From contig CDMY01000580.1 of the NCBI GenBank assembly GCA_001179505.1, forward strand, positions 1 through 48,023: a stretch of 48,023 nucleotides of DNA, given 5' to 3'. Origin of the DNA: Vitrella brassicaformis CCMP3155 (taxonomy: Eukaryota; Protista; Chromerida). The notes under the pieces were generated by a model, which saw only the letters and a list, made by a program, of their open reading frames with translations, did no database searches and was not told where the DNA came from. This document shows, piece after piece, positions 18,370 through 39,736 of this stretch. The position numbers and the translations under genes are program-made. How positions within the stretch are numbered: the stretch's first letter is position 1; the number at the start of each line of letters is the position of its first letter.

Positions 18370-19259
18370 GTCGCGAGCCGTCCGGGACGCTGTCAAACCG
18401 ATCATCACCATCGAGACCTGCGACGGATGGATGTGAGCTCAATCTGCACATACATCAGTGCGTGTCGCCCACGTGTGACCCTTGCGTGTGTCCTTGCAGC
18501 ATCATCATAATACTAGTCATATGGTGGATCAAGACGATCAAGGAGAGGAAATGCATAGCGTGCCCCGAACTCGAGGGCATCGACCACATACAGGTGCAAA
18601 AAAAGTGGCAGACTCGCTGTCTGGTTGATCACATTGCCCACACCTCTCTGTCTGTCTGGCTGTCTTCGTTGGTGCAGGTGGCGACACAGCCAGTGAGTAG
18701 CGGTGAGCGAGACATCACGGACCCCGTCAAGGTACAACCATGTCCACACACAACAAACACCCTCCTCCATCACACACAACACACATCCCTCTCCCTCTCT
18801 GTGTCTGTGTGTGACACCTTTTCTGTCAGTTGGTGAAGCTTATCCAGCAGCAGCACCCCAACCTGACTCTCCGTAAGCACGCCCGCCACGAGTCGGTGTT
18901 CGCATTTCGATGTTCTGTTGCTTTGCAGGCGGGATGGTGGCTGGCTTCCTACTCAACGGAGGCAGCCACTTCCCGCGGGTGGTCAGCAGTCTCCCCGAGG
19001 CCTTCACGCTGCTCGAAACGCACAATAACATACAGGAGGTGAACATCACTCACACAACATGCCACTCACCCTGCACACGACATTTGCCCACCTCTTGTGT
19101 GTCTCTCCATTTGTCTGTCAGGTGGTTGAGGTGGTGAGTAGCAGGCGGCTGGCCGAGGGCAAGCCCATGCCTAGCTACGCCACGCAGCTGATCTATGATA
19201 TCACGCTGGCCGCCATGCACGGCCCGGTGCTGGCCAACATATCCGACCGTAATGACGAG
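18362..19259 (+). CDS. Hypothetical membrane protein, partial (runs into gap)
   Basis: In-phase exons IIIILVIWWIKTIKERKCIACPELEGIDHIQ|VATQPVSSGERDITDPVK|LVKLIQQQHPNLTL|GMVAGFLLNGGSHFPRVV...|VVEVVSSRRLAEGKP... with canonical splice sites. Confidence 0.55.
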
Positions 19260-19337
19260 GCACGTGAGCGATCACTGCACACACCACACACACAAGTGGC
19301 AATCATCACTCGTGTGTGGTGTATTGACTGTCTGTGT

Positions 19338-19637
19338 NNNNNNNNNNNNNNNNNNNNNNNNNNNNNNNNNNNNNNNNNNNNNNNNNNNNNNNNNNNNNNN
19401 NNNNNNNNNNNNNNNNNNNNNNNNNNNNNNNNNNNNNNNNNNNNNNNNNNNNNNNNNNNNNNNNNNNNNNNNNNNNNNNNNNNNNNNNNNNNNNNNNNNN
19501 NNNNNNNNNNNNNNNNNNNNNNNNNNNNNNNNNNNNNNNNNNNNNNNNNNNNNNNNNNNNNNNNNNNNNNNNNNNNNNNNNNNNNNNNNNNNNNNNNNNN
19601 NNNNNNNNNNNNNNNNNNNNNNNNNNNNNNNNNNNNN
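19338..19637. other. Assembly gap (300 N)
   Basis: Run of N. Confidence 1.
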
Positions 19638-19982
19638 CGTCAACGTCTTGTTGCTCCTGTCTCATTCTCTTCATCTGACGCTGCACCTCCCCCTCGTCCA
19701 GCCCCTCGGTGCCCAGGTTGTGGCCGTACAAACTGGTCTTCTGCAACGCCATCATGTCGCCCTTGCGCCCCTCCCCCTCGTCGCCCTCGCCCCTCTGTTT
19801 TCTCTTCCGGCGCCGCTCCTTCTTGTCCGTCGTGGCGCCGCTCAGCAGCCCACCACCACCACCACCAGCACCAGCAGCACCGGCCTTGCCAGCCCTGTCC
19901 CTGCGCTTGGCTGGCCGCCTCCCTCTCTTTTCCTCCTCTGAGTCGCGACTAGTCCCCGCTGCAGTAGCAGCACCTCGCCCCG
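19638..19982 (-). CDS. SLU7-like C-terminal fragment, running into the gap
   Basis: K/R-rich ..DKKERRRKRKQRGEG.. followed by TSLYGHNLGTEGLDEGEVQRQMKRMRQEQQDVD. This resembles the Slu7 segment preceding the RKRKYN motif (similarity judged by eye). Confidence 0.4.
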
Positions 19983-20947
19983 CCGTCCACTCGCCGCCGC
20001 CTCATAACACACAGACAGGCAGGCGTGTGAAAAGCTGTCGGTCGCTTGGTGCCATCCATCCATCCATCAATCAATCAGCCAATCCGGCAGTGAACGAGCC
20101 ATCTTAGCGATGTCTGTCCAGCTCGCCGCGCGACGTGGCCAACGTCAGCAGCCAGAGCGGAACCAATCTGACCGACACACACATGCGTGCAGCAAGCACA
20201 CAACAAACACACAGATGAGGTGAATGGGAGAGCACATGTCGATCGCTTGGTGTTGTCGCTCACTCACTCGCTCACCGGATCTCATGGCCGCATCGCTGAA
20301 CGCATCAAATGCTGTCCAGCGGGAGTACGATTGCTTGGCGGCCACACAGACCCTCTTTCACCCTCGGCCGAGGCGTCATCCTCCCTCACATCAGAGTCCA
20401 GTCCGCCGGCCAACGACCCGGGCTGCCAGCCAACTGAAACAAACGAAGCACATGACAAAATGAACACCAACTGGTCATCCATATGCTACAGACGTGCGTG
20501 TGGCGCTGTCTGTGTACCTCTCACCTCATCAGAATGGCCTGCAGGAACGCACGGCACGGCTGTCTGTGCCTCCTCCTTGCCTGCCTTTCAGCTCAATCGA
20601 CAACACAATTAACAGTCAGTGGATCTATACATGGTGATCGAGGATGTGGCCAGGCACCATCAAACGCTAAACGCTTCTGCGAGCTTTGCGACAAAAGCGG
20701 CTCCAGATTGGTAAGTGTTCTTGGTGGACTGCGACAGCACGGCACCTGCCAGATTTGCAGGCTGTCCTTCCAATCTGAGGAGCTATGGACCCTGCCCTCA
20801 AAACGAAGCGGAAGAGCCGACCCCCGTTTATTGCGGGCCGTGTTTTCTATGTTGGGACAGACCGACAGAGGACTTGGCCGTCAGGCCGCCTGTTAGTAGG
20901 GTGCTCCCTGAAGCCGCTGCTGCCGGCGGGCAGCCCTCCGGCTCACC

Positions 20948-23661: not shown

Positions 23662-24144
23662 TTTGACGGACCAGAGGAATGACAGCACGGCACCGCTCTC
23701 GCTAGGCCGCTGGGATGACGTGGCTGAGCGGATGAACGGACGCGCCTGTGGCAGCTCAGACCCGCTCATCGGGAGACGACGCACACATGCTCATCAGCCG
23801 ACCTGACCTGAGGACGGCAAGATGCACAGCACAAAGATGCCAACCATATTCTTGCCCTGCCCTTGCCTGGCATCCGCCGCTCCTTTGCAAGCAGCGGTTT
23901 CAGGGAGCACCCTAGCTGGCCTGGCCTGCTCCTTTGCAAGTGCGTGCGAGCTTAGAAACGGCGAGCTTTGAATGAAATAGGATTCCTGAAGCAGTGCAAC
24001 GCTCAACACACTACTAGATCCAAGTCCAGGAGCTGCTTTCAACCGTCTTGTTTTTGCTGCGAGCGGTTTTGCCTTTTTCATCTTCCTCCTCATCCCTCTC
24101 CCTCCAGCTCCGTCTGGTTTTTGCCTGTCCGCCGCGCCGCCACC

Positions 24145-24898
24145 ATGACGGAGTCGACGGCGACGTCGCTGTCCCCGACTGACAGCGACTACAACTCGTT
24201 TCCCCAGATCCCCACCAAGAGGGTGCTCGTTACGGGCGGCGCCGGCTTTATCGGCTCACACCTCATCGACATTCTCATGCAGAACGTAAGCCTGAAAAAG
24301 AGAGCAAAACAGCACAGCGAGGGAGACCAACACGGGCAGAAAACACACACACCAACTGGGGAAAGGCGTGACTGTCTCGGTTTTTGTCTGGTCGGGGTGT
24401 GGTGTGTGGTTGTGTTGACCCAGGGCAACGACGTGATATGTGCTGACAGTTACTTCAGCGGCTCCAAGGAGAACGTGGCCAAGTGGATCGGGCACCCCAA
24501 GTTCGAGCTGATGCGGCACGACGTCACGCAGCCCCTCCTGGTGGAGGTCGACCAGATATACCACCTCGCTTGCCCCGCCTCGCCAGTGCACTACCAACAC
24601 AACGCCATCAAGACCCTCAAAACAAACGTACGTACGCCTGCCACACAGACGCAACACATTGAGGAGGGAGGGAGGGAGGAAGGGGGAGACGTTGATGGGC
24701 TCGTTCTCTGTTGTTCTGGTGTTGGGTATGTGTGTGTGGTCCTGGTGTGTTCAGGTGTTGGGTACGTTGAACGTGTTGGGTTTGGCCAAGCGGACGGGCG
24801 CCCGGCTGCTGCTGTCCTCCACGTCAGAGGTCTACGGCGACCCCGAAGTCCACCCACAGGTACACAACGCAACACACACATCGACAGAGAGAGAGACG

Positions 24899-24935
<37 letters not shown>

Positions 24936-26279
24936 ATGGAAGCCTTTCTACCCGCCTGTCTGCCTGTGTGTTGTGTGTCGTGTTTGTGGTGTTAGGTGGA
25001 GGAGTACAACGGCAATGTCAACTGTGTGGGTCGGCGGTCGTGCTACGACGAGGGCAAGCGGTGCGCCGAGGCGCTCTGCATGGACTACCACAGACAGCAC
25101 CACGTCGACATCCGCATCGCGCGCATCTTCAACACCTACGGCCCAAGGATGTTCTTCCACGTACCCCACCAACACACACTCAATGAATGACACGCGGACC
25201 TTTGTGGTGGTGTGTGTGTGTGTGTGAGTGTAGGACGGTCGTGTGGTGTCCAACTTCATCGTCCAGGCCCTCAGGGTAGGGTAGCCCACCACCGGCCGCA
25301 CAGGGCACCACACAAACGCAAAACGCACTGACTACCGTGTTGTGTTGTGTGTGTCATCAGGGCGAGTCTCTGCCGATCTACGGCGACGGTCTGCAGACGC
25401 GCAGCTTCTGCTACGTCGAGGACCTTGCCAGGGGACTCCTGCTGCTCATGAACTGTACGCGACCCACACACACATACCATGACACCACACGGTTCGTCTG
25501 TGGTGTGGTGGTGTGTGTGTGTGTGTGTGCAGGCGACTACATCGGCCCCATCAACATCGGCAACCCTGTGGAGTTCACCATCAAGGAGCTGGCCGAAAAG
25601 GTGCGCGCCAAGGTCAACCCAAAACTCAAAATCGAATACAGACAGTAAGCCACCGCCCGTCCGTCCATCCATCCGACCGCCGTCGTGCATCTGTCTGATG
25701 TGTGAATTTGTGTGTGTGTCGGCGTCCTCAGGATGCCCAAGGACGACCCGAAGCGCCGCCAGCCAGAGATCACCAAGGTGAGTGGCCAAGGCACATGTGT
25801 GTGGTTGTGTGGCTTCATGAGTTGGTTGACGCCTGGGATGCAGGCGCGCAAGATCCTGGGTTGGGAGCCGCGTGTGCACCTGGACGAGGGCCTCCAGCGC
25901 ACCGTCGATGACTTCAAGAGCCGCGCACAGGCAAACCCAAAGGTTAGTAGCTCACCCCCATCCAGGTCACGACACCACACACGACACTCATATTCTCCCT
26001 GTCTCTATATGTGTGTGTGTGTGTGTGTTGACGAGCAGAATCTGTTTATCATGCACCAGACCGAGGCCAAGCCGGTCGACGACGACGACGAGGCAGAGCA
26101 GCAGCCGCCCGCCAGCAAAACCATGGTGGGTGGGCGACTGACTGAGTTGTTTGAGCGAGAGGGGCAAAGAAAGCGACCTGATAGATACCCCTCCTCTCCT
26201 CTCCTCTCCTCTCTCTCTTCAGGATGGCAGTTATGGGGCTGGCGAGGGCGGCCCCAGCGTCGTGGAGGCGGGCGCGTAG
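24145..26279 (+). CDS. UXS1: UDP-glucuronate decarboxylase / UDP-xylose synthase (extended SDR), 11 exons
   Basis: gccgccaccATG start; [108 protein letters not shown]. Junction phases checked. Confidence 0.97.
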
Positions 26280-27191
26280 AGGGCCGCGTGACACCCACAC
26301 CGACAGACACCCATACACACGGCGGACAATCGAACCACCCTTTTGTGGATGGAAGAGTGCGTGTGTCGGGGGGCTGTGGAGTGTGTGGGAAGTGTTGTCG
26401 GCCGATGGATGATGGATGGATGGATGGATGGACGGTTGGGGGGGCTGGTGCCGGGCAAAGGAGGGATAGCTAGACGGCGGACAGGCAGATCATCGACTCT
26501 CTCTGACGTAATTAGCTTGGTCTTCTTGGCGCGAACGAGGTGGGGAGACGGAGAACTGATTATTGCTGGTATGGTGGCATATTGCACACGTACGCACGCA
26601 GAGAGAGAGAGGTGGGTCTGAGATGAGATGCGCGCAGAGGAGGGAGGGAGGGAGGGAGCGGTGTATATCGTTCGTATTGATAGCTATCAATATGTGTAGT
26701 CAGTCGGGTGTGAGGGTGGGTGTGTCGAGAGAGGTCCGTAGTCGATGAGTGTGCTCTGTGTGTGTTCAATCTATCTATCTGTCTATCTAATCTGTGTCGA
26801 TTCGATTCACCCATCAGCCGACCCGATCCTCCCCCCAGTCCTACCTACCCTACTTGCTTGCCATATTTTCCCCCGGCCTTCTCTCTGCCGCTCTGAAAAA
26901 GGAGGTCAAGAGAGCATTTGTATCTATCATTCAGGACACTGACCGACAGCCAGCCAGCCAGCCAGCCAGACACACAGACCGACAGATGGATGTGGGGAGT
27001 GGTGGGTGGGGGCCCGGGCCGCTGTGTAGAAGTGACGACTGTCTGTGTAGCCTTCCTTCATCTCATCCTCTTGTCGCTGGATACGATACGTATTGTCATG
27101 CGGCGCCGCCCACTCAGGGAGTGCCACGGCGTGCGGTTCGTGAGTCCGTTCGTGAGTCCGTGCGGGGATGCCCCTCTCTCCCCCCCCCCCC

Positions 27192-27491
27192 NNNNNNNNN
27201 NNNNNNNNNNNNNNNNNNNNNNNNNNNNNNNNNNNNNNNNNNNNNNNNNNNNNNNNNNNNNNNNNNNNNNNNNNNNNNNNNNNNNNNNNNNNNNNNNNNN
27301 NNNNNNNNNNNNNNNNNNNNNNNNNNNNNNNNNNNNNNNNNNNNNNNNNNNNNNNNNNNNNNNNNNNNNNNNNNNNNNNNNNNNNNNNNNNNNNNNNNNN
27401 NNNNNNNNNNNNNNNNNNNNNNNNNNNNNNNNNNNNNNNNNNNNNNNNNNNNNNNNNNNNNNNNNNNNNNNNNNNNNNNNNNNNNNNNNNN
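27192..27491. other. Assembly gap (300 N)
   Basis: Run of N. Confidence 1.
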
Positions 27492-29501
27492 CTCTCCCGT
27501 ATTCGGCGTAGGCCTCTGTCTGTGAGAAGAGCAGCTCCTTGGGCGGGTTGAGGTGGTCCTCGCCGCCATACTTGCCCAGCAGCTCCTGCTTCTTCTCCTC
27601 TTGCAACGCCTGCAGTGCACACCACACACGACAAACGCGTCACGTCCACAACGACCCAAACCCCCCTCGCCCCACTCCCCCCCACCGCCCCTCTCTCTCT
27701 CTGGTGAGTGAGTGACGTACGTACGTACCTTCTTTTTGTCGAGGTGCTGCTTGTACATGTACTCGAGCTGTGTGGGCTGGGCCTGGAAATGCACCTTGGA
27801 ACCGTGCTTATACGACTCCCACGCAAACGCCTCGCTCGTCGCCATCCCCAGGGCGTCGGCAGACATCCGCACGTAGTTGTCGCCGCGGAAGACGCCCTGA
27901 TCGTCCTCGTTCAGGTGCTTCAGAGGGTTGTCACGCATCGACCTGGCACACACACAGACGGCACAGCACGGCACACGTGTGTGGGGATGGGATGGCTTGT
28001 GGGGGCGGGGGAGGGGGGAGGGGGTGAAGGATACCTTACCTGCTCTTGGGGTCGTAGAAGGCCGATCCGAGTTCCAGGTTGTAGAGGTACTTGGCTGTGT
28101 CCTCGCGGATGCGAAGGTTGCGTGAGGTGGTGCGGGTGCGGTCGTCCTTGGTCGCCACGGGGGCGTTCTGCTCGTCGAAGTCGCGCACCTTGACGTCATC
28201 GTCCGACGCGCCGCCGTCAGAACCCTCGCTGTCGCTGCACGCCAACACGCACACACACACACATCAGACCCCTGTGCTGATTGCTTCCACTTTGCGGGCC
28301 GTTCTGTGTCTGTGAGGCTTCGTTCACATACGTGTCAGTCTCGCTGTCGGTGTCGGTGTCGTGTCCGTCGGTGCCGTCGTCATCATCGCCCTTCTTGTTA
28401 TCGTGGTTGCTGGCGGCCTCTCCCTGGTTGTTGGCCGTTGTGGAAGAGGCGCCCATCCTGCTGTCCAGCTTCTCCAACTTCTTGCGAATCTTGCGCTTCT
28501 TGCGGCGGTCCGTCGCGGCACTCAACTGCTCCCTGATTAGAACAAGGGTGGCACGTGTGTGTGGAGGGGTTCTGGTTTAAAAGGGGGGGGAGGTGAGGTG
28601 GCACCTGAGTTTCTGGTTGAGCTCCTGCGCCTTTCGTCTCTTGCGCTCCATGTCGGCCCGCTCGTACTCGTCGATGACGTCCTTCTTGTAGGTCGACGGG
28701 TCGTAGTTCATCCAACGGTCACGCTTGCCTGAAGACACACACCGCACAGAAGACCATAGACCATTGCCGCATCCACACATCAATCAGGGTCTGTCTAGTT
28801 CAGTAAGCAACGTACCCTCAAAGCCGAGTTCTTGGATCTGTTTCTGGTCGTCCTCGTCTGGCAGTCGCTCGTCGGGTCTGATGTTGCTGCCCGTCCACTT
28901 GGCGCCCTTCCTCCGGGGACGCTCCACACAGTCCTTTGTCGCGTGAGTGATGGCACCGCAGTTCTCACACGCACCTGACACACACCACCACACCAAACCA
29001 CTCCACACACGCGCCATGGACACACACATCTCCACGTGTGACATTTGCCGCGCCAGCGCACCTTTCCTGTACTTGGACGCGGCTTCCTTCTTGAGTCCCT
29101 TTCGCCATGAGAGGTCGAGAGGAATGCGGCTGCCGTCGGGTTTGAGCCGCTGGTGCTTGAGGGAGGGGCCGCTCTGGCTGAGGTACCAAGGAGCCTTAGA
29201 GATGTACTGGGGAATGTGCGGATTGATGTCCTGATGTACACACAGACATTCACAGACAGACAGACAGGGAGCAGGGACAGAGACAAGCAATCAGTGAGCA
29301 CCATGCATGGCGTCGTGTACGTGTGGACAGCGTGAACCGTCCCTTCCTCCCTCCCGCTGTCTGTCTGTCTGTCCCTCCCTCTGTTCGCGTACGTACCCGC
29401 CCCTCTTCGTCCTTCTCGGCGGGAGCAGTGCCCGCCTTGCGCATCTCCTCCAGCTCCTTGGCCTTCTTGATCTCATCGCGACTCAGAAACTGATCCGCCA
29501 T
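27492..29501 (-). CDS. SLU7: Pre-mRNA second-step splicing factor Slu7 (3' part lost in or after the gap)
   Basis: [49 protein letters not shown], zinc knuckle [78 protein letters not shown]. Confidence 0.96.
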
Positions 29502-30001: not shown

Positions 30002-33000
30002 ATGCTCGTGCTTCTCCTTATCAGCAGTATGGTGGCTCTATCAATCGCCCAGGCGCCTCTCACGTGCGAGGCGGGGTGCCCCGCAGTGGCTGCTACATCG
30101 GCCAACGACAGCAGCAGCAGCAGCAGCAGTAGCGGTAGCCGCTCCTCTGACTTTTATGTGGTGCGTCGGGAGTGGCTGTCGCACCATATCGCGTCGTCCC
30201 TCTATGCAGCGGTGGTCAGCCAGCACCTCAACCTGACTGTGGGGTGCGTCGGCCGCTCGTGGGAGGCCAGCCACAGCAATGACGACGTGGGCGACATGCG
30301 GAAGGGGTGCTACCAGGTGGATGTGGAGGTGTGGCCGCAGCACGAGCATGAGAGCGAGGATGGCGACGCCGTCGGCACGCTGGACGGCGGGCAGGTCAGC
30401 TACCGCGGCACACGCGGGCTCTTCTTCCCCCGGGCACTCGCAAACCGTTTCCCAGAGCAGCACCTTGAGTACTGGCGGATGCACGCCACCGCCAACAGTT
30501 CCTCTGCGGCACTTGGATACTTCCAGACCACCACTGACCCGTCGTGCTGCGTCAGCAGCAGCAACGGCGGCAACGGGACTTCGGACAGCGATGAGGGGGA
30601 GGTGATGAGGGCTGAGTGTGAGTGCCAGGTGGTGTATGCGTCGCCATTCCTTGACCGTGGCGGCGAGCTGGGCCGCATGCTGCGCGAGCTGGGGATCCCT
30701 GCCTTTGTCGAGTATGTGGGTGGCGGGGGCGGCAACGGGACGACCTTTGAGGAGGAGATGGAGAGGCTACTGCTGGGGTGGGAGGAGGCATTCAACCAGA
30801 CAGCAGGTAAGGTACCTACTTACTGTCCAGAGAGAAGCAGCCACAGGCATTCTTCCTTTCTCGCTGATTTGGTTCGTTTGCTCCTCCCGCTTAGATGCCG
30901 GGGACACTCTTCCCGCGGCCCCGCTGTTCGAGTACGTGTGGCCGGACCCCCTGACAGACCCTCTCACATCCCCCCTACCGCTGCAGGAGCTGCTCCTCCC
31001 GCCCCCACCACCATCATGCGCAGACAAACTGGACCACCACCACCACCGACACGAGTTCCAATCACGCGACGACGACCAGCAGGGAGAGGGAGAGGGAGAG
31101 GGAGGGAAGGGCGCCAACCCTCTCTGCTCATACCAGGTGCGTCACACGAGAGAGAGAGAGGGAGAGCGCTAGCTGGAAGCGACCGCGTGGTTGTCTACAT
31201 CTGTGTCTGTGTCTGTGTCTGCGTGTCAGGTTCGCGTGTTGCGCAAGGAGGCTAGCGAGATGCTGCTCCGGGAGTTCCCTGAGGCCAACTTTGTGTTGAA
31301 CAAGATGGCCCTCACGGCGGCAGACATGCAGCTCCTCATGAAGCGAGTCCACGGCCTCATGGCGGCAGACGTCGATGTCGATCGCGACACGGCCGTCGAC
31401 AGAAGCGTCAAGGAATGGGTGGATGCCCACCCGACGTAAGCATGCACCACCTCCATACCCACACAGGCGCCGTGCCCGATATCTCTCTATCCCTCTCTCA
31501 TGTCAGGTTGGTGAGGTCGTGGCTGCCGTCGTCATGCTCGTCGCAGGGGCTGGTGTTCAGCCCCCTGGACGCCTCTTGTCGCGCCGGCTGCCCTCTCGGC
31601 ACGCAGCCATGGGGCCTCCTGGAGTGCCGCGCCTGCCCGCCAGGCACTTACCGAGACGACATCGAGCTGGCTGCATGCCTGCCATGCCCACCTGGTAACA
31701 CTAACACACACACACACACACCGCTCACACCGCTCACACCCCTCACACCCCACACACCATACCATGCAACACCTGATCCATTATGTGTTGTCTCAACAAC
31801 AGGTACGTACCACAATGCGTCGCTGTCCGAGCCGGCGTGTGCGCAGTGTCCGTTGGGGACGTTCAGCGTCGGCGAAGGGCAGGGCACCTGTGTGCAGTGC
31901 CGAGGCGGCCAGGGGCTCGCCTGCAACGAGATGGCCGTCGGAGTCAGACCAGGATATCGTTTGCTGGAGCCGATTCGCACACGGACGGGTGGCGAGGTGG
32001 CTCTGGTGGTGGCCCCCTGCCCCGTTAAGGAGGCGTGCCTGGCCTCGCAGTGGTGCGACGCAGACAGCATCGACCAGGGCATTTGCACCCCTTCTAAGGA
32101 CCAGCTCCAGGCCACACATGGCCATGGGACGGAGCACAGGATGGTGGATGTACCCAAGCTGGACGACCAGTTCCAAGCGTAAGAACACACACACACACAC
32201 ACACGCACATGGATCGACCAGGTCAGGCCAAGTGCGCCTGAATGTGTGTGTGTTGTGGGTCGATACGTGTCTGTCAGGTGTGCTGAGCATTACAGGGGCA
32301 ATCTGTGCAGCTCCTGCTCGGATGGCTCCACCCGTCTGCTGCAGGGGCAGTGCGTGGCGTGCGCAGAGCTGCTCGGGAGGTGGGACCACGTTCTCATATC
32401 GGTCAGACCGACTCACCCAGACAGACCGACAGACAGCCCGCCGCAATGCCTTCGCAAGTGTGGGCTTCTTCCTTCCATGTGTGTGCAGGTGAGTGTGGTG
32501 ATCTTTCTGGTGCTGTGTCTGTGCTTCGTCTTCATCAACCTACGCAAGAACCGCGGCAACCAAATCAACGGGGCCCTGGGAAAGGTGTGTGTGCATGTAT
32601 GTGCACAGTGACCTCACTCGCCCACAAAACGTCAATTCCTGTGTGTGTGTGTGTGTGTGTGCGTGTGTGTGTGTGTTGCGTCACCTGTCAGATCTTCCTC
32701 AACTACCTGCACCTGGTGAGCTTGGCGTTCTCTGCAGCTGCCTTCGACTTCGGTGCGCTCTTCCCTTCCTACGTGGACGCGGCTCGCATCGCCGGCAACG
32801 CCACACTACAGCCGGACAGAATGCTCTACCTCGGTACGGCCACCCCTCCACACACCCCCACACCCCCACCCACACCCACACACCCACACACACAGAGCAC
32901 TCTCTCTTGTTCTCTGTTTCCTCTGTGTGTTGGCCAGGGTGTCTGTTTCAGTACCTGGGCTACGAGCCACAGGTTCTGCCGCAGATCAACCTGGTCATCG

Positions 33001-36000
33001 CCTTCGTGGCGCCGTTCGTCATTACGGGTGTGGCCAACGTCGTGGCCTACTGCTGCCCGGGCGATGACGCTGACGAGGACGACGCCGCCGGCCACAAGAA
33101 GGAGGACTACAGGCAGCCGATGACGCCGCCCGGTGTCGTGCCGCCCAAGGACGACTCGTTCCACCAGCCGTCGACCTCCCTGACCAATGTCAACACCAGC
33201 CACGGCTCGTCCGTCAACAACCCGCCATCGACCAACCGCAATCCGGACGACGTCCCGACCAGCCAGGAGGACGGCAACCTCACACACACCAAAGACGTAC
33301 GTTAGTGAGAAGGAATATTTCTCACCCACACAGCACAGCCCCAATCACCTCTCTCTGTGTCCTTCATTCTTTCCTTGGGTCATGCAGACTGAGGCCCAGC
33401 CCGCCCTAGCCCCGCCAGCAGCCCCGGTGCGTGCGCCCCGTGGCGGTTTCCGCAAGTTCTCCCTGCAGGCCGTGCAGGCCCTCCAGGCCGTTGCCAGTCC
33501 CCCTGCCAAAGTAGGCTCCCCCGGGTCGCCCCCGATGTCGCCCGGGGGTGGGGAGAACCCCGACCAGCCGGCGCACGTGCGGCGGGGCGGTCGGAAGGCA
33601 AGCGTGAGGGGGTGGCAGGGCGAGAACCTCTTCAGGCCGGGGATCGAGGTCGACTCGGTCATGACCAACGCCACTGATGTGGTGAGCGACAGAGAAGAAG
33701 GCATGGCGGGGCGGGATGTGTGTGTGGTGTTGTGTGTCTGTGTTGTTCAGGCGTCTGTTGGTCTGGAGGTGGGGTATGCGTCTCAGATGATGGCTGACCT
33801 GGACTTCGACGGGCTGCGTTCGTCGCTGGTGAGCTCCTCCCGGCCCAACTACGACAGCAACACATTCGTCGACTCCACGCCACTCGGATTTCCTGCCAAG
33901 CCCAAGGTGCGGTGCCCTTCACACCTTCACACGCACACACGTGTGTGTGCATCGTCTCATGCGAATCTCACCCATCAGGAGGAAGACTCCCCCCCTCCCT
34001 CTCCCCCTCCCTCTCCCCCAAGCCAACAGGGCGGTGTGGACCTCGCGAAGCTCCGAAGAGCCATTGAGACCCGCAAGACCCGGCAGCAGCTGGAGGTGCA
34101 GACGTCTGAGGAGCATGACGCCACCACCATCGTCACCAGCGGCGGTGATCCCGCTTCCACCCCGGGGGGGCAGGAGAGAGACAGCCTTCAGGACGTTACC
34201 TCATCCAAACAGTCGGCAGCGGCGACGGCAGCCACTGGAACCACTACCCCCACCGGTAGGTAGACAAACACACCACCCACCCAACATCCACACCCACCAA
34301 TGGTCGATGGACATCCGTCCGTCATTTTGTGTGCGATCGATGTTGCCTGCTGAAACAGGGAGTGCCAGCCATTCTTATGGCTTCGGCTCGAGCGACAGCG
34401 TGTCTCGGAAGCCGCCTCCCCGTATAGTGGAGGAGGTGGGTGAGCACATGGCCGAGATGCCCCCGCAGGAGCGCAGCTGGATCAAGCGCGTGGGCGACCA
34501 GAACAAGATGTTCCTCGAGAAGTCGCACGAAAACGCAGCCATGATGGCCAAGGCGCTGAAGAAGGGAATCGGTGAGTGAGAAACAGACAGAGGGAAGGAG
34601 AGAGAGAGGGAGGGAGCTGGCATCTCCGTCTGTGTATGTTATCGATGTCAGTGTGGTCGATCGGTTTGAGTATCCGAGTGACGATGCGGCTGATAGCCCT
34701 GACGACACTAGATCTGTTCGCCAACCGCATCGCCATGATTCTCATGCTCATCTTCCACCCCGTCATCATCAAAACGTCCGCAGCCCTCCCCCAAACCCCA
34801 ACTCACACCCCTTCTCCGCTTATCCATTCTCTCTCTCTGTGTGTGTGCGTGTGTCGGTGGTGGGACAGGTATCTGGACAGCATCAGCTGTGTGGAGCTGC
34901 TGCCCGAGGGCACGGCGAGCCTCGCCCCCGACGCCAACCGGTGGTTCATGAAGACCAACCTCGACAGAATCTGCCCCATGGCATCTGGGGTAAGCCGAGA
35001 GAGGGACGATATCCACCACGCAGCACGCGACACGGAGGGATCCATGCGTGTGGGTGGGTGTGCAGGTGTTTGAGTGGGACTTTTGGCTGGCGAGTGCTGG
35101 TCTGCTGATATGGGGCATCCTGTTCCCCCTGTTTGGCTTTATTCTCATCGGCGTCAGGCAGGAGGCAATCCTCATTCACGCGGAAGGTGCGTCAGCCCAT
35201 CCATCCATCCATCCGCCATTCGCCCCCCTGAACCAACACACACACACCCGCCACCCCACCTGCTGTGTGTGTGGTTGTGTCAGAGCGAGCCCGGTTCGGC
35301 TTTATGATCAACGGTTATCGAGAGGACTTTTATCACTGGGAGTGTGTCCAGCTGCTCAGGAAAGTCATACTACTCGTCTGCCTCGGTGAGGGGGTGGGTG
35401 GGTCTGTCTGGCGTGCACTGGCTGCACGCAGGACGCAAGACGGGCTGGGCTGGGCTGGGCTGGCTCGTTTGACTGACTCCGATCTGCGGGTGTGGTGTGT
35501 ATGTGTTGTGTGTTCTGTGTTTGCCGCCTCTGTGTCTGTCTGCTATTTCAGCCTTGCCGTATGGCAATGAGTTTCGGGCTTTTTGGATGCTCGTGTTTGG
35601 AGTGGTCTTCCTCTCGTTTCAGCTCGTCTTCCAGCCATATGGTCAGTCCCCTCCCTCCCTCCCTCTCGCCATCACACAAAGAGACGGATGGCACGCTCAC
35701 TCGTCTGTATGTGCGGTGTGTGTGTGTGTGTGTGTCTGTGTGTGTATTGTAGATGACCGGCACCACAACATGTTTAACCGTCTGGAGCAGTGGTCTCTCG
35801 TCAACTTTGTGGTCACCCTCTTCGCCGCCATCTTCTGGAGCCTCCGGGCCTTCAGCGACACCTACGACGCCGACGCGCTCAACCAGGGGGTCAGCCACAC
35901 CACACCAGCCATGGAGCCGCAATGGCTCACGCGGAGTGCATGATCCACGTGTGTGTGTGTGTGTGTGTTGGTTGGTGTGTGATAACTGTCAGTTTGAAGC

Positions 36001-39000
36001 CTTGGGTGGCGGCGCCACTCCGTCATCGACGATAGCTGCGCAGATCATCCTGGCGCTGGTGACGTTTCTGCAGACCTTTTTCATGGCCTTCTTCGCGTGG
36101 GCCTTCCTCAGAACCAATATCACACCGCTCAGGTAGGTTAGCTACCTGGTCTGGTATCCTGTCAGCCCTTTCCCCCCTACACACACACACACAACCCTCT
36201 CTCTCTCTCTGTGTGGGTCTCAGGGAGTGGCGCTCGCTGGGCGGTCGGCTGTGCCACAAGATGGAGATGACTGAGGAAGGCTTCTTGAAGATCCAGGACC
36301 TCAAGCTCTGGGAGAAGAGACAATTCGCAAAGGCCATCGCCAACGCCGTCGTGCAGGTACCCTCACCCTCTCCCTCTCCCTCTCCCTCTCCCTCTCCCTC
36401 CCCCTCATATGCGCGTCTCTTTGTTGCCGTGACGTATGGGTGTCTGTGTTGATGCAGTTGGTGGGCCATCCGAAGATAGTGTGGTTCGACCCTGCCGACC
36501 TCCGGGACACCTTAAAGAGCGCCTTCCGCCGCCACCAGGAGTTTCCCCACGAGAGGCACGCCACAGGGCTGGGCAAACTGCTCGACAGGGTGCTCAACGC
36601 CAGAAACGAACGCTACGAGAGGTGGGTGCTCCTCGGCTCGGCACACACACGTGCCACACGCGTCGATATATGGCGTCGTGTGTGGTGTGCATCTCTCTCC
36701 CTCTGTGTGTGGTGTGTGTGGTGTGTTTGTGTGTTCAGCCGTCTCCGTTTTGTGGAGCAAGTTCGCAAGAAGTTTTCTTCCGCGAGTTTGCCGACGAGCA
36801 GCGCGTCCTCTTGGGGCGGCTGCTGGGGCTCCTGCGCCACTCGGTGGCGGCTGTGTTGGCAGGGGGCACTCAAATGCATCACCTGCAAGACCTATGGCAA
36901 GGACCGAGCCGGCAGCAACGGTGAGGGAGGGAGGGCGAGAGGGATACCATGGCTGGCCGCACTGTGTGGTCTGTGTGGTTGTTGCCAGCAGATTCCCCCC
37001 ACCACTTGACGAACAGCCAGACCCTCAAGAGCCTCTACAAGTCCTACGTGTCGGGCCGCTCCGACACCTCCCTGCCGCAGGACCTCGCCGTGCAAATCGA
37101 GACCGACCCCGAGGACGACCCACACAGGCCAATCCTCAGACACCTCTTCATGTGTGACCGGTGCGTCTGCAGGCCTCTGCCTCCGCCCTCCCTCGCAGCA
37201 CACCTGCCTTTGCACCCTCGTGTGTGTGTGTGTGTTTGTGTGTGTGCAGATGTCGGACGATCCGCCGAGGAATCAGCTTTGTGTGCAGCATGCCCGACTG
37301 CGGCTACCGTGTGTGCCGCACCTGCATGCCCACCCTGTGGAGCGACTGGACCGACAAACGCACCGACAGCAACGACACTGTGGGAGGGGACTTCCCGCGG
37401 GAGCTCGACGGCCGCGAGCCACACGTCCACATCACGCAGAACCACCACCCCACCATGTACGTCTGTCTGTGTCCAGTGCGGCGCGGTGCGGTGGGGTGCG
37501 TTCAATTTAAGCTGATTGGTGTCTGTCTGTGCATGTGCCACAGGTTGGTGTTGGAGCGTCAGTCTGAGCTTGGCATGACTGTCGAGGAGCTGCAGAGACG
37601 ACTGTGGGAGGTCCCAACCAGAAAGAAAAAACTCAAGGTGGGTAGGGGACGTCCCACCGACCCATCCACCTATGCATGGCTCTCTCCCTGTGAGGGTGTT
37701 TCTGACGTGCAGAACCAGCAGGAGGCCGAGCCTCGTTTCCGTCGGATCAGCCGCACCCGCACAGCTGACCTGACCGAGGCCGGGCTGAGGTACCAGTACA
37801 CTGTCACGCCTTTGCCCCCGCCCATCCCCCGCGAAGAGCGGCATCAGCAGCAAGCCACCAGCACCAACCTCAAGCACAAGACCACCAAACTCACCACCCA
37901 CAGAGCGGCGTCCATCCGGCACAAGCCGACACGTCAGGCCAGCGACGAGACGGTGGACCACCATTCCACCGCCCACAACGGTCACGCCGCGGGGGGGCCG
38001 CCGACGATAACCATCTCCCAGGTCAACAACGCCATCAGCAACATCACCAATAACAATAATGACAGCACCAACGGCAACAACCTATATGTGGCGAGCCTGA
38101 CGCGCCCGGCCAACAACCACCAGCCCAACAGTCAGGTCAACATCTTCTCTCACCCCAACATGTTCTCCCAGCCGCTGACCACCAAGGCCGGCCGCCCGGT
38201 GCCCGTGCCAGCCTCCATCTGGCGGGAACAGCTGCGTGACCTTGATGAAACCATCCGGCAGGGCCTCCCTTTGTCACAACCCCCTCCCATGTCGCTGGAC
38301 TTGACCGCCGCCCCTCGCGGCAACGTCAACTCGCTCAAGAACCTCCTGGCCCCGCCGATGCGCGAGAGGCCCGACAGACTCATGGCCCGCAGAACCGAGA
38401 GGTGGGAGAGGGAGAGGGAGAGGGAGGTGCCCTCCCCCCGGCCCCTTCAGCTGGCCCTTGCAAGTGGCCCCACACCTGCACCGTCTTTGCTGCCCGGTGG
38501 TGGTGAGGAGCCTTCGTCTTCTATCGACCCTCGGATGGCCGACATGTTTGCGCAGATCCAGATCCAGCACCACAGCCACGTCTCCCGGGACAGCGTCGAC
38601 AGCCGCCGGTCGTCGCACCGCTCGACGCACAGGACGTCCAGCAAGGGCCCCGGGGAGAACTCCAACCTCTCCCAGCCGTCGTCCATTCCCTCACGGCCGC
38701 CGTCCCCCTCGGCCAGCAGCCGGGGCGGCCCCCCGAGTGACATTGACAACGACACGACCGACAGGGACATCAAGTCGACGCCCGAGCCGTCGATCCCCAC
38801 CTCGTCGATGGTCATGGCCGGCCAGCTCCGGCCACACACCGGCGGCAAGTACAAGGTGCGCGCCGACGTCAGGAGGGAGCGGGAGGCCCTGCCGCCGGCC
38901 TTCCGCTTCACAGCCGAGGGGCCGCTTGGCGGGACGCCGTCAGCACCGCCGGCGCCCATCCCCCCACACATCCCCTCTGGCACCATCGGCCCGCCTGCCA

Positions 39001-39736
39001 CCAGCAGTGAGGGGCTGCCTACGCCCGACCCGCACGAGCGTCCGTCGGCCCCCGCCCACCGGCAGCACCGAAGGCAACCGCACTCCGGGAGGAGGAACCG
39101 TGGCTATGTGCTGGACATTCAGGAGGCCTATGCCCTGCGCATGGGGGCGGTGGAAGACGTCCACGGTGGCCCAGCTGAGGGTGGCGACGGTGGGGATGGC
39201 GCTGACGACATGAATATGGCGGATGTGATGGAGAGAGGTGTGGGTGTGGGTGAGGGTGAGGGCGGTGGGGCGTCCTCGGCAGACGGCGGTCTTGGGCTGG
39301 GTGCGGGTGTGATGGCTGCGCACCACATGGCGACCCCCGAGCTCATAATGCGCCATTCCCAGCAGCGAGGTGAAAGGGGATAGCTGAGCTGAGAGGCAAC
39401 ACCATGCAATGCACACCACCAGACAGTGAGTGGGCCTGCCTACCCAACAGCATTTAGTCGACAGACACACAGAGAGACACTACACCCACTTGACGACTGC
39501 ACTCAACTCTCGCCGTGACGCACCTGTCATCTCTCTCTCCGCTCTCCCTCTCTCTGTCTGTCTGTTGTGTGTGTGCAGGAGGTATATGGTGCATGCCGTG
39601 TGTGCATTGGCAGGAGATGATGCGCCAGGCCGCCCTGCGACAAGCCGATGACGGCCAGGACAGCGACGAGGAGTCCCAGTGGCTCAAGTCAGTCCCCGTC
39701 TGCGAGGCCTGCATGCGCTCCCGCGCAATGTCTTGA
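30002..39736 (+). CDS. Receptor/channel-like protein: signal peptide, OpuAC/ProX-like periplasmic-binding domain, ephrin-receptor-like/GCC2-3 Cys repeats, Flc/Pkd2 TRP-like multi-TM domain, Cys-rich zinc fingers and a long disordered tail; about 28 exons
   Basis: About 27 GT-AG junctions checked by hand keep one frame to the stop at 39736. Motifs: EWLSHHIASSL..GCYQVDVEVWP..GQVSYRGTRGLFFP; EWVDAHPTLVRSWLP; CPPGTY repeats; CAEHYRGNLCSSC; KIFLNYLHLVS; RFGFMINGY..WECVQLLRK; QPY..NRLEQWSL. Alternative start at 29906. Confidence 0.8.

Follow-up and report, generated by a model that had tools for sequence, protein, structure and literature searches.

A predicted Vitrella gene joins an OpuAC/TmoX-type solute-binding domain to a Cys-rich stalk and a nine-helix Flc/Pkd2-type membrane body

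Receptors in which an extracellular flytrap domain acts on a membrane module, among them the ionotropic and metabotropic glutamate receptors (iGluRs and mGluRs) and the GABA-B receptors, are central to animal neurobiology. Together with the ANF/guanylate cyclase receptors they share one logic, in which a periplasmic-binding-protein (PBP) fold on the outside controls a module in the membrane. Vitrella brassicaformis is a free-living alga and a relative of the malaria parasites, and here we describe in strain CCMP3155 a predicted gene whose product would follow the same logic with other parts. The gene occupies positions 30002–39736 of the window, that is, of the 48,023-nucleotide stretch that was analysed (contig CDMY01000580.1, positions 1 to 48,023), and all of its features given below lie on the plus strand. 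Its product is predicted to run from a signal peptide through one OpuAC/ProX-type domain (the flytrap), Cys repeats of the Ephrin_rec_like/DUF7630 type (the stalk) and nine transmembrane (TM) helices to a long disordered tail. On balance we favour reading it as a surface receptor of N-out, C-in orientation that is encoded by one gene and whose flytrap would sense a small osmolyte and act through the stalk on the nine-helix body. The Vitrella flytrap is of the cluster-F OpuAC type, whereas those of the animal receptors are of the LIVBP or LAOBP type, and the membrane fold is unrelated; mGluRs have a Cys-rich linker, and NCD3G matches the Vitrella protein faintly (0.052).

Homologous class II flytraps are described from bacteria: the trimethylamine N-oxide (TMAO)-binding protein TmoX of Ruegeria pomeroyi (PDB 4xz6) and the dimethylsulfoniopropionate (DMSP)-binding protein DmpX (7yle) (PMC8918994, PMC10030565), together with OpuAC (2b4l) and ProX (PF04069). 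The bacterial proteins and the Vitrella domain share a W...S start, a D.E.W motif, a Gly-rich hinge and a C-terminal W..WxP, and Vitrella also has two of the putative cage tryptophans and the FP..GC...C Cys loop that is common to TmoX and the eukaryotic flytrap domains. In bacteria these proteins work with ATP-binding cassette (ABC) transporters, either in soluble form or anchored to lipid, whereas the Vitrella domain is the N-terminal ectodomain of a predicted eukaryotic multi-pass protein; compared with TmoX and DmpX it has an Arg for a ligand-contacting Glu, one shifted cage position and two inserts.

For the nine-helix body, likeness of fold on AlphaFold models extends to fungal Flc1-3 and YOR365C, to S. 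pombe Pkd2, Trp663 and Trp1322, and to Dictyostelium SadA and TmcB/C, a group at a sequence identity of ~10–12%. In Pkd2 an N-domain outside the cell precedes nine TM helices and a disordered tail (bioRxiv 10.1101/2022.08.11.503631), and reconstituted S. pombe Pkd2 permeates Ca2+ on membrane stretch (PMC9727806). The N-domain of fungal Flc/Pkd2 proteins is ML-like or lipid-binding, in contrast to the flytrap and Cys-rich stalk of Vitrella. In layout there is a further likeness to the CRMPs of Toxoplasma and Plasmodium, which combine Cys repeats with nine TM helices in N-out, C-in orientation and are proposed sensors before rhoptry discharge (PMC9815656, PMC9670195). The ectodomains of CRMPs sense contact with the host and contain Kringle, MAR or lectin modules, and CRMPs act as part of a complex at the site of rhoptry secretion. 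The Vitrella protein, likewise from an alveolate, has the same layout of repeats and nine TM helices; its likeness to apicomplexan and ciliate CRMPs (modular ectodomain, EGF/ephrin-like repeats, nine TM helices) is one of layout only, taken from descriptions, and no CRMP was among the best 30 AlphaFold cluster matches of the membrane core of the dinoflagellate homologue P0002, in a survey with no search aimed at CRMPs.

The same module order, with homologous flytrap, stalk and core, is found in the dinoflagellate proteins P0001, P0002, P0004, P0022 and P0003/P0015/P0018/P0021, which are ~18–28% identical to the Vitrella protein, and the Amphidinium carterae fragments P0023–P0025 join them with the same layout. 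P0001 (2,004 aa) and P0002 (1,758 aa) each have two tandem Pfam OpuAC domains, Ephrin_rec_like repeats, a multi-pass region and a cytosolic domain, which is DUF6829 in P0001 and TIR_2 in P0002. P0001 is a complete open reading frame (ORF) from an MMETSP transcript, so the architecture exists on one mRNA elsewhere. The notion that the fusion is unique to the Vitrella gene thus fails, the same layout being present on complete dinoflagellate ORFs, while the proviso in an earlier note on this DNA that it might be catalogued as a hypothetical family proved apt, as these uncharacterised proteins are in databases. A literature search found nothing that joined OpuAC with these protists, with ephrin-like repeats or with the nine-helix body. 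We regard the Vitrella gene as a divergent member of a catalogued, uncharacterised family, a variant on the theme of flytrap receptors and not a category of its own. Specific to Vitrella are its single flytrap, where P0001, P0002 and P0022 carry two in tandem; a ~410-aa insert that splits the core between TM3 and TM4, where the dinoflagellate core is compact; the residue Arg141; and a disordered tail with Cys motifs instead of TIR_2 (P0002, P0004) or DUF6829 (P0001).

Gene model and predicted topology

The model was built from splice sites read against open frames and was then checked by script. It has 28 exons and a coding sequence of 7,077 nt (2,358 codons, for a protein of 2,358 aa) whose sole stop is terminal. 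All 27 introns are GT...AG and 69–209 nt long, and the junctions are canonical and in phase. Coding potential was scored as codon-usage log-odds in a leave-one-out design, with training on all other exons: in the model frame every one of the 28 exons was positive, neither of the other two frames rose above zero in any exon, and the scores of all 27 introns were near or below zero. Exons without homologues, in the long loop and the tail, also scored as coding and did so in the model frame only. The binding-domain profile homology crosses the E2/E3/E4 junctions, and the loop-excised TM core (E6–E9 plus E14–E19) was covered by hhalign as one piece.

The least certain details of the model are the frame of exon 23, the donor of exon 5 and the exact E1/E2 boundary, which falls inside an insert relative to the homologues. 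Exon 23 (36739–36920) has the smallest frame margin (11.8 versus −0.2), and exon 12 scored weakly when a smaller training set was used. The second frame of exon 23 reads FFREFADEQRVLLGRLLGLLRHSVAAVL and scored −0.2, or +3.0 with the smaller training set; it was rejected, having no canonical splice path to exons 22 and 24. For exon 5, CA|GTGGTG at 32049/50 (segment 32049–32178) offers a second donor in phase, whose use would remove 42–43 aa and would make the DUF7630-like module contiguous, as in the homologues. This shorter exon was rejected because the 42–43 skipped codons score as coding, and the donor could be an alternative splice. The window has a G+C content of ~0.58–0.60 and short introns. 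By reading of the sequence, dinucleotide runs of the (TG)n or (CA)n type are present in many introns of the gene, and TGTGTG...CAG is the form of many acceptors.

A putative signal peptide (aa 1–17/18, 30002–30052) was recognised by inspection from the hydrophobic N-terminus MLVLLLISSMVALSIAQA. The ectodomain extends to ~aa 644 and has 31 Cys and 7 N-glycosylation sequons, and by hydropathy nine hydrophobic helices follow at aa 645–667, 683–705, 743–765, 1176–1199, 1250–1273, 1303–1320, 1325–1346, 1358–1380 and 1405–1430. If the N-terminus is outside, the Cys-containing TM2-3 and TM4-5 loops fall outside as well, and the long loop and the tail fall inside; cysteines and sequons are found in predicted outer loops and basic residues follow TM9. 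Hydropathy thus predicts a nine-TM topology with the N-terminus outside and the C-terminus inside. The earlier note had read about 28 in-frame exons across 30002–39736, and the rebuilt model, with 28 exons at identical coordinates, confirms its observation of one long spliced gene. Its signal peptide, extracellular Cys repeats and 8–9 helices correspond to the leader, the 31 ectodomain Cys and the nine helices above, and all the motifs it quoted are present (REWLSHH, VDVEVW, GGQVSYRGTRGLFFP, EWVDAHPTLVRSWLP, RFGFMINGYREDFYHWECVQLLRK and QPYDDRHHNMFNRLEQ).

Flytrap, stalk and membrane core

Pfam was run on exon-sized pieces. As many exons share each domain, such scans put the domains at a disadvantage, and the domain calls rest mostly on intermediate homologues. 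The flytrap (aa ~50–426, exons 1–4, 30149–31531) was delimited by homologue profiles and MAFFT. With exon 1 as query against 1.84 billion representative proteins, phmmer returned exactly two matches, P0001 (8.8e-9) and P0002 (5.4e-5), and these fall on the OpuAC domains of both proteins, scoring 46 and 54 bits. A family hidden Markov model (HMM) of 15 domains matched the Vitrella model at aa 51–178 (38 bits, 4e-14) and, across the E2/E3/E4 junctions, at aa 345–426 (12 bits, 3.6e-6). The MAFFT L-INS-i alignment was collinear over the whole flytrap, including the second half, which hmmalign in glocal mode left unaligned. Pfam OpuAC (PF04069) gave 14.5 bits on exon 3 (E 0.028, profile positions 209–242) against a cut-off of 21.2.

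In alignment A2, which includes exon 1, 8 of the 13 aligned flytrap domains pass Pfam OpuAC at E ≤ 0.01. The A2 profile matched betaine-type binding proteins only among PDB sequences, with 4xz6 (1.2e-15) and 7yle (2.6e-11) as the best matches, then 2b4l, 3tmg, 3l6g and 7ahc, and a feature search of the ESM Atlas returned OpuAC clusters as 98 of 100 matches. Foldseek with the confident N-terminal piece of an AlphaFold2 (AF2) model of exon 1 gave mostly PBP-II folds, none at a significant E (≥ 0.17), the most probable being TmoX (0.96, root-mean-square deviation 1.9 Å over 64 columns, E 0.3). Sequence searches of Pfam and PDB with exon 1 found no OpuAC, just ATP-grasp matches that we put down to chance, on a stretch rich in Gly; when the flytrap region of P0002 was the query, a word-indexed search limited by its length window and words returned only P0002 itself. 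The genome's own annotated protein was absent from the matches among the 1.84 billion representatives and from a word search seeded with the exon 1 alignment. Homology of the predicted flytrap to the OpuAC/TmoX family is well supported by these comparisons, its place in PF04069 being reached via homology to members of that family.

Pocket residues were compared with those of TmoX and DmpX (PMC8918994, PMC10030565). The putative cage tryptophans W58 (30173–30175) and W111 (30332–30334) align with TmoX Trp55/Trp102 and DmpX Trp35/Trp84; in A2, W111 is invariant and W58 nearly so, and a family-conserved Ser aligns with DmpX Thr64 in our own reading of the alignment. Across the 13 domains, which come from distant alveolates, W58 and W111 are conserved together with the motifs of the Gly-rich hinge and of the C-terminal helix. 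Y282-V283-W284 in FEYVWPDP (30933–30941) is the counterpart of the family F-Y-W-W-x-P and of TmoX F220/W222. In the strict alignment V283 stands at the cage Trp position (W222/W202) with W284 adjacent, in a register uncertain by one residue. Arg141 (30422–30424) stands at the DmpX Glu113 column in the printed alignment and with MAFFT; TmoX Glu131 sits in an unaligned stretch, and its equivalence to Arg141 is drawn by analogy. The position varies across the family (E/S/A/R/V/Q). An intact ligand pocket in the Vitrella flytrap is plausible on this alignment. The incomplete cage and the change from Glu to Arg leave the ligand open; as a speculation, Arg141 would suit an anionic ligand group (carboxylate, sulfonate or phosphate).

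The stalk (aa 428–634, 31535–32362) was matched directly by Pfam Ephrin_rec_like (PF07699) at 2.4e-11 and 43.7 bits in two stretches, above the cut-off of 23.1, and belongs to that family. DUF7630 followed at 0.019 on exon 5 and 0.001 on exon 6, directly before TM1, as in the homologues.

The membrane core comprises TM1–TM3 (aa 645–765, 32393–33053), placed by hydropathy and hhalign, and TM4–TM9 (aa 1176–1430, 34699–36109), placed in addition by the family HMM; the latter region contains the motifs RFGF...Y.W...LRK (35292–35363) and QPY...N (35638–35787), and its TM4-5 loop, predicted to be extracellular, contains Cys. The core family HMM matches aa 607–672, starting within the stalk, and aa 1178–1373, skipping the long loop. 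Compared by hhalign with A3, an alignment of the dinoflagellate-type membrane core family with 20 members, the loop-excised core aligned at 93% (E 3e-7, 312 collinear columns). In our own reading of that alignment the Vitrella core matches the conserved A3 columns C189, P193, C207, F260, R264, F265, Y270, R279, P317 and N324, which represent the cysteines of the outer loops together with the motifs R-F-x-F...Y...R and P-(W/Y)...N. Both halves of the core occur in order on either side of the loop, and a single domain divided by the loop is, short of RNA, the strongest argument for placing them in one gene.

Seven of the 20 A3 members match Pfam TRP (PF06011) at E ≤ 0.01 (best 1e-8) and match no other membrane family; in full-length scans P0018 scored 31.3 bits against a cut-off of 28.5, and P0003, P0005 and P0019 scored 25–27 bits. 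Core exons E14–E20, scanned singly, did not match PF06011 (7 of the 11 core exons, 30–120 aa each). The Flc/Pkd2 fold was found on the dinoflagellate homologue P0002, whose residues 1000–1400 gave an AF2 model with a predicted local distance difference test score (pLDDT) of 84 and a predicted template modelling score (pTM) of 0.83. Against AlphaFold Swiss-Prot this model matched a Dictyostelium LRR protein (9.6e-12, TM-score 0.71) and Flc3, Flc1, Flc2, YOR365C, Pkd2, SPCC1322.03, SPCC663.14c and SadA (E 1.8e-6 to 4.5e-4, TM-scores by query 0.53–0.59), as well as Cryptococcus Flc1 and Dictyostelium TmcB/C. The name "TRP" of PF06011 denotes the nine-helix Flc/Pkd2 family of fungi and is to be kept apart from the canonical TRP channel with its six helices. 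The Vitrella core is, as judged from its sequence, a divergent member of the A3 family, one domain interrupted by the long loop.

Solved structures gave no counterpart for the core. The A3 profile had no match among PDB sequences; Foldseek of the P0002 core against PDB gave a best E of 0.11 and TM-scores ≤ 0.27 among the best 50, and VIA-wide against solved structures gave a best Z of 9.1 over ~120 of 401 residues among the best 50, which is within noise for helical bundles. Neither set of 50 best matches contained a TRP or polycystin chain, and no seven-TM domain of class C G-protein-coupled receptors (GPCRs) and no iGluR pore was found among the matches listed from PDB or AlphaFold Swiss-Prot. 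Canonical TRP, GPCR and iGluR membrane folds were accordingly rejected, none being among these matches. Of what the earlier note had proposed for these modules, the OpuAC/ProX-type domain is upheld by the exon 1 matches to the OpuAC domains of P0001 and P0002 and by the family profile's matches to TmoX, DmpX and OpuAC, and the ephrin-like Cys repeats by the direct Pfam match. Its PF06011 domain stands at family level, through the A3 members and the fold, and falls as a canonical six-helix TRP channel or GPCR; its distinction from iGluR/mGluR agrees with the matches listed.

The core also occurs behind many other ectodomains. A word-indexed search with the P0002 TM region returned 20 proteins from dinoflagellates (Polarella glacialis, Effrenium voratum) and from transcriptome and metagenome assemblies, all of which share a ~400-aa core behind Ephrin_rec_like repeats; their ectodomains include OpuAC-like, ANF_receptor, NMT1+CUB, Bmp, FG-GAP/VCBS and desulfoferrodoxin-like types. 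In AlphaFold clusters and the ESM Atlas many protist proteins match the core and carry LRR, FN3, Sushi or EGF ectodomains, under automatic names such as 'TRP C-terminal domain-containing' and 'ephrin receptor-like domain-containing'.

A possible osmolyte receptor and its alternatives

In the receptor that we favour, the flytrap would capture a small quaternary-ammonium or sulfonium solute of the betaine, TMAO, choline or DMSP class. Closure of the flytrap would be passed through the rigid, disulfide-rich Ephrin_rec_like/DUF7630 stalk, which would act on the nine-helix body with its Flc/Pkd2/SadA fold. The body may then signal inward by passage of Ca2+ or other cations, for which reconstituted S. 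pombe Pkd2 is the precedent, or the signal may travel via the cytosolic loop and tail, for which the TIR (also DUF6829) tails of the dinoflagellate relatives are the precedent. We infer ligand binding, the ligand class, the coupling of the domains and the nature of the output. The variety of ectodomains, like the signalling tails, speaks for a receptor and against a carrier.

Several observations count against this receptor. Its gene model is a prediction from genomic DNA alone, and the flytrap and TM-core exons of Vitrella stay below Pfam thresholds when scanned singly. The AF2 model of exon 1, built from a 13-row alignment, has a pLDDT of 46, with the first ~60 residues (beta-alpha-beta-alpha) as its confident part. 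Relative to the homologues the flytrap has two inserts, one of them His/Asp/Gly-rich. Of the four cage tryptophans two are securely conserved, the third being off by one and W177/W152 not alignable, and an Arg replaces the Glu (TmoX Glu131, DmpX Glu113) that contacts the polar end of the ligand. On the membrane side, the homologue that bears the fold aligns with the Vitrella core at ~18% identity. Flc proteins were first described as flavin carriers, and channel activity of Flc/Pkd2 proteins rests on few fungal studies; we know of no member of the protist nine-helix family that has been studied.

Foremost among the alternatives is a contact or adhesion sensor like SadA or the CRMPs, in which a degenerate flytrap would serve as a protein or glycan module; we hold this to be unlikely, though it deserves to be kept in view. 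SadA is among the fold matches, CRMPs are laid out alike (Cys repeats, nine TM helices, N-terminus outside), adhesion-type ectodomains are found on many relatives, and a partial cage, the change from Glu to Arg and the two inserts would all fit a flytrap in decay. However, W58, W111, the hinge and the C-terminal motifs are kept in 13 domains, as would be expected if selection acted on a working pocket, 8 of the 13 still pass Pfam OpuAC, and the CRMP likeness is drawn from layout.

Less probable again is an uptake system or transceptor, in which the flytrap would hand its solute to the nine-helix body for transport, by analogy with OpuA fusions. The PDB match 7ahc is an OpuA permease with a fused binding domain, and Flc1-3 are named 'flavin carrier proteins' in Swiss-Prot. 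Yet the same body bears LRR, CUB, FN3, Sushi, EGF and ANF-receptor ectodomains, which are macromolecule binders or receptor parts, and it bears TIR signalling tails; solved transporter folds went unmatched beyond generic helix bundles (Foldseek E ≥ 0.1; VIA Z ≤ 9.1 over ~120 residues), and there is no ATPase or other energy-coupling module. We consider uptake distinctly improbable.

A partly artefactual reading frame, made of at least two genes (flytrap, stalk and TM1–3; TM4–9 and tail) or including unexpressed loop or tail exons, is very improbable: although no homologues match the 410-aa loop or most of the tail, G+C-rich DNA yields long chance ORFs, the second frame of exon 23 scores near zero, exon 12 is weak with the smaller training set and the model was predicted from genomic DNA, every homologue has the nine-helix core as a single domain, whose halves here flank the loop in order, 27 of 27 junctions are canonical and in phase, loop and tail exons are coding in the predicted frame only and introns are not, no intron exceeds 209 nt, so that there is no room for a promoter or terminator, and a C-x2-C motif spans the E24/E25 junction.

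A narrower form of the receptor, in which the Flc/Pkd2-type body is a Ca2+ pathway opened by a marine osmolyte of the betaine, TMAO, DMSP or choline class on the flytrap, is in our judgement quite unlikely. If true, it would mean that a flytrap-gated channel was invented independently and unrelated to iGluRs, and it would provide a tractable model for how CRMPs convert a signal to rhoptry discharge in Toxoplasma and Plasmodium.

Read as a receptor, the protein would indicate that alveolates built the flytrap-receptor logic of animals from other parts, an OpuAC/TmoX binder and an Flc/Pkd2-type body. For this body no solved structure was found here, its fungal mechanism is disputed between channel and carrier, and its nine-helix layout recurs in CRMP sensors needed for apicomplexan invasion. 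Most relatives carry orphan adhesion-type domains, and a family member with a probable small-molecule ectodomain would offer a handle on the function of the body. Betaine, TMAO and DMSP are major currencies among marine algae, bacteria and corals, and a eukaryotic surface sensor for them would matter for chemotaxis and symbiosis. The solved proteins nearest to the flytrap come from marine bacteria, which raises the question of a horizontal origin. The value of the finding is tempered by the fact that the same architecture is already public, unnamed, in dinoflagellate data, and that its function here is our inference.

Cytosolic regions, further family members and neighbouring genes

The TM3-TM4 loop (aa 766–1175, ~410 aa, 33054–34698) is encoded by exons 9–13, which are coding in frame. 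It is rich in Pro, Ser, Ala and Gly, is absent from the dinoflagellate homologues and is probably disordered and cytosolic. The ~930-aa tail (36110–39736) has positive coding scores throughout, coding to 39733 with the stop at 39734–39736. It is mostly low-complexity, with Cys-rich zinc-finger-like motifs at 36821–36886, 37156–37328 and 39593–39715, the second of which, C-x2-C, is the one that spans the E24/E25 junction. Exon 25 gave sub-threshold RING-like Pfam matches (TRAF3_RING 0.0043), and exon-wise Pfam scans, one of them covering three tail exons, found no other tail domain.

In the family at large, TIR_2 stands directly after TM9 in P0002, P0004, P0012 and P0019. An F-L-C-H-H-K motif is conserved in A3 at the junction of TM9 and tail and is missing from the Vitrella gene. 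P0008–P0010 (Polarella glacialis and transcriptomes, ~2,670 aa) unexpectedly combine the nine-helix body with a precomputed Pfam match to PF01880, which we take to be the desulfoferrodoxin type. A haptophyte cluster in the ESM Atlas (~868 aa) joins OpuAC (PF04069) to Bestrophin (PF01062) and would be another osmolyte flytrap on a channel family.

Upstream, on the minus strand, lies a homologue of the pre-mRNA splicing factor SLU7 (27114–29501; Pfam Slu7 3.7e-19 on the ORF 27114–28262). Its first coding exon apparently starts at 29501, ~500 bp from the receptor ATG and in the opposite direction, and the 5' end of the receptor gene is thereby bounded. Further upstream, the plus-strand ORF 23968–25227 has an N-terminal Rossmann motif and matches NAD-dependent epimerase and GDP-mannose 4,6-dehydratase (Pfam 6.2e-7 and 2.1e-6), and it probably represents a single exon of a gene for a sugar-nucleotide enzyme. 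In 1-kb bins the G+C content is ~0.43 at 19001–20000 and 27001–28000 and 0.53–0.67 elsewhere in the window.

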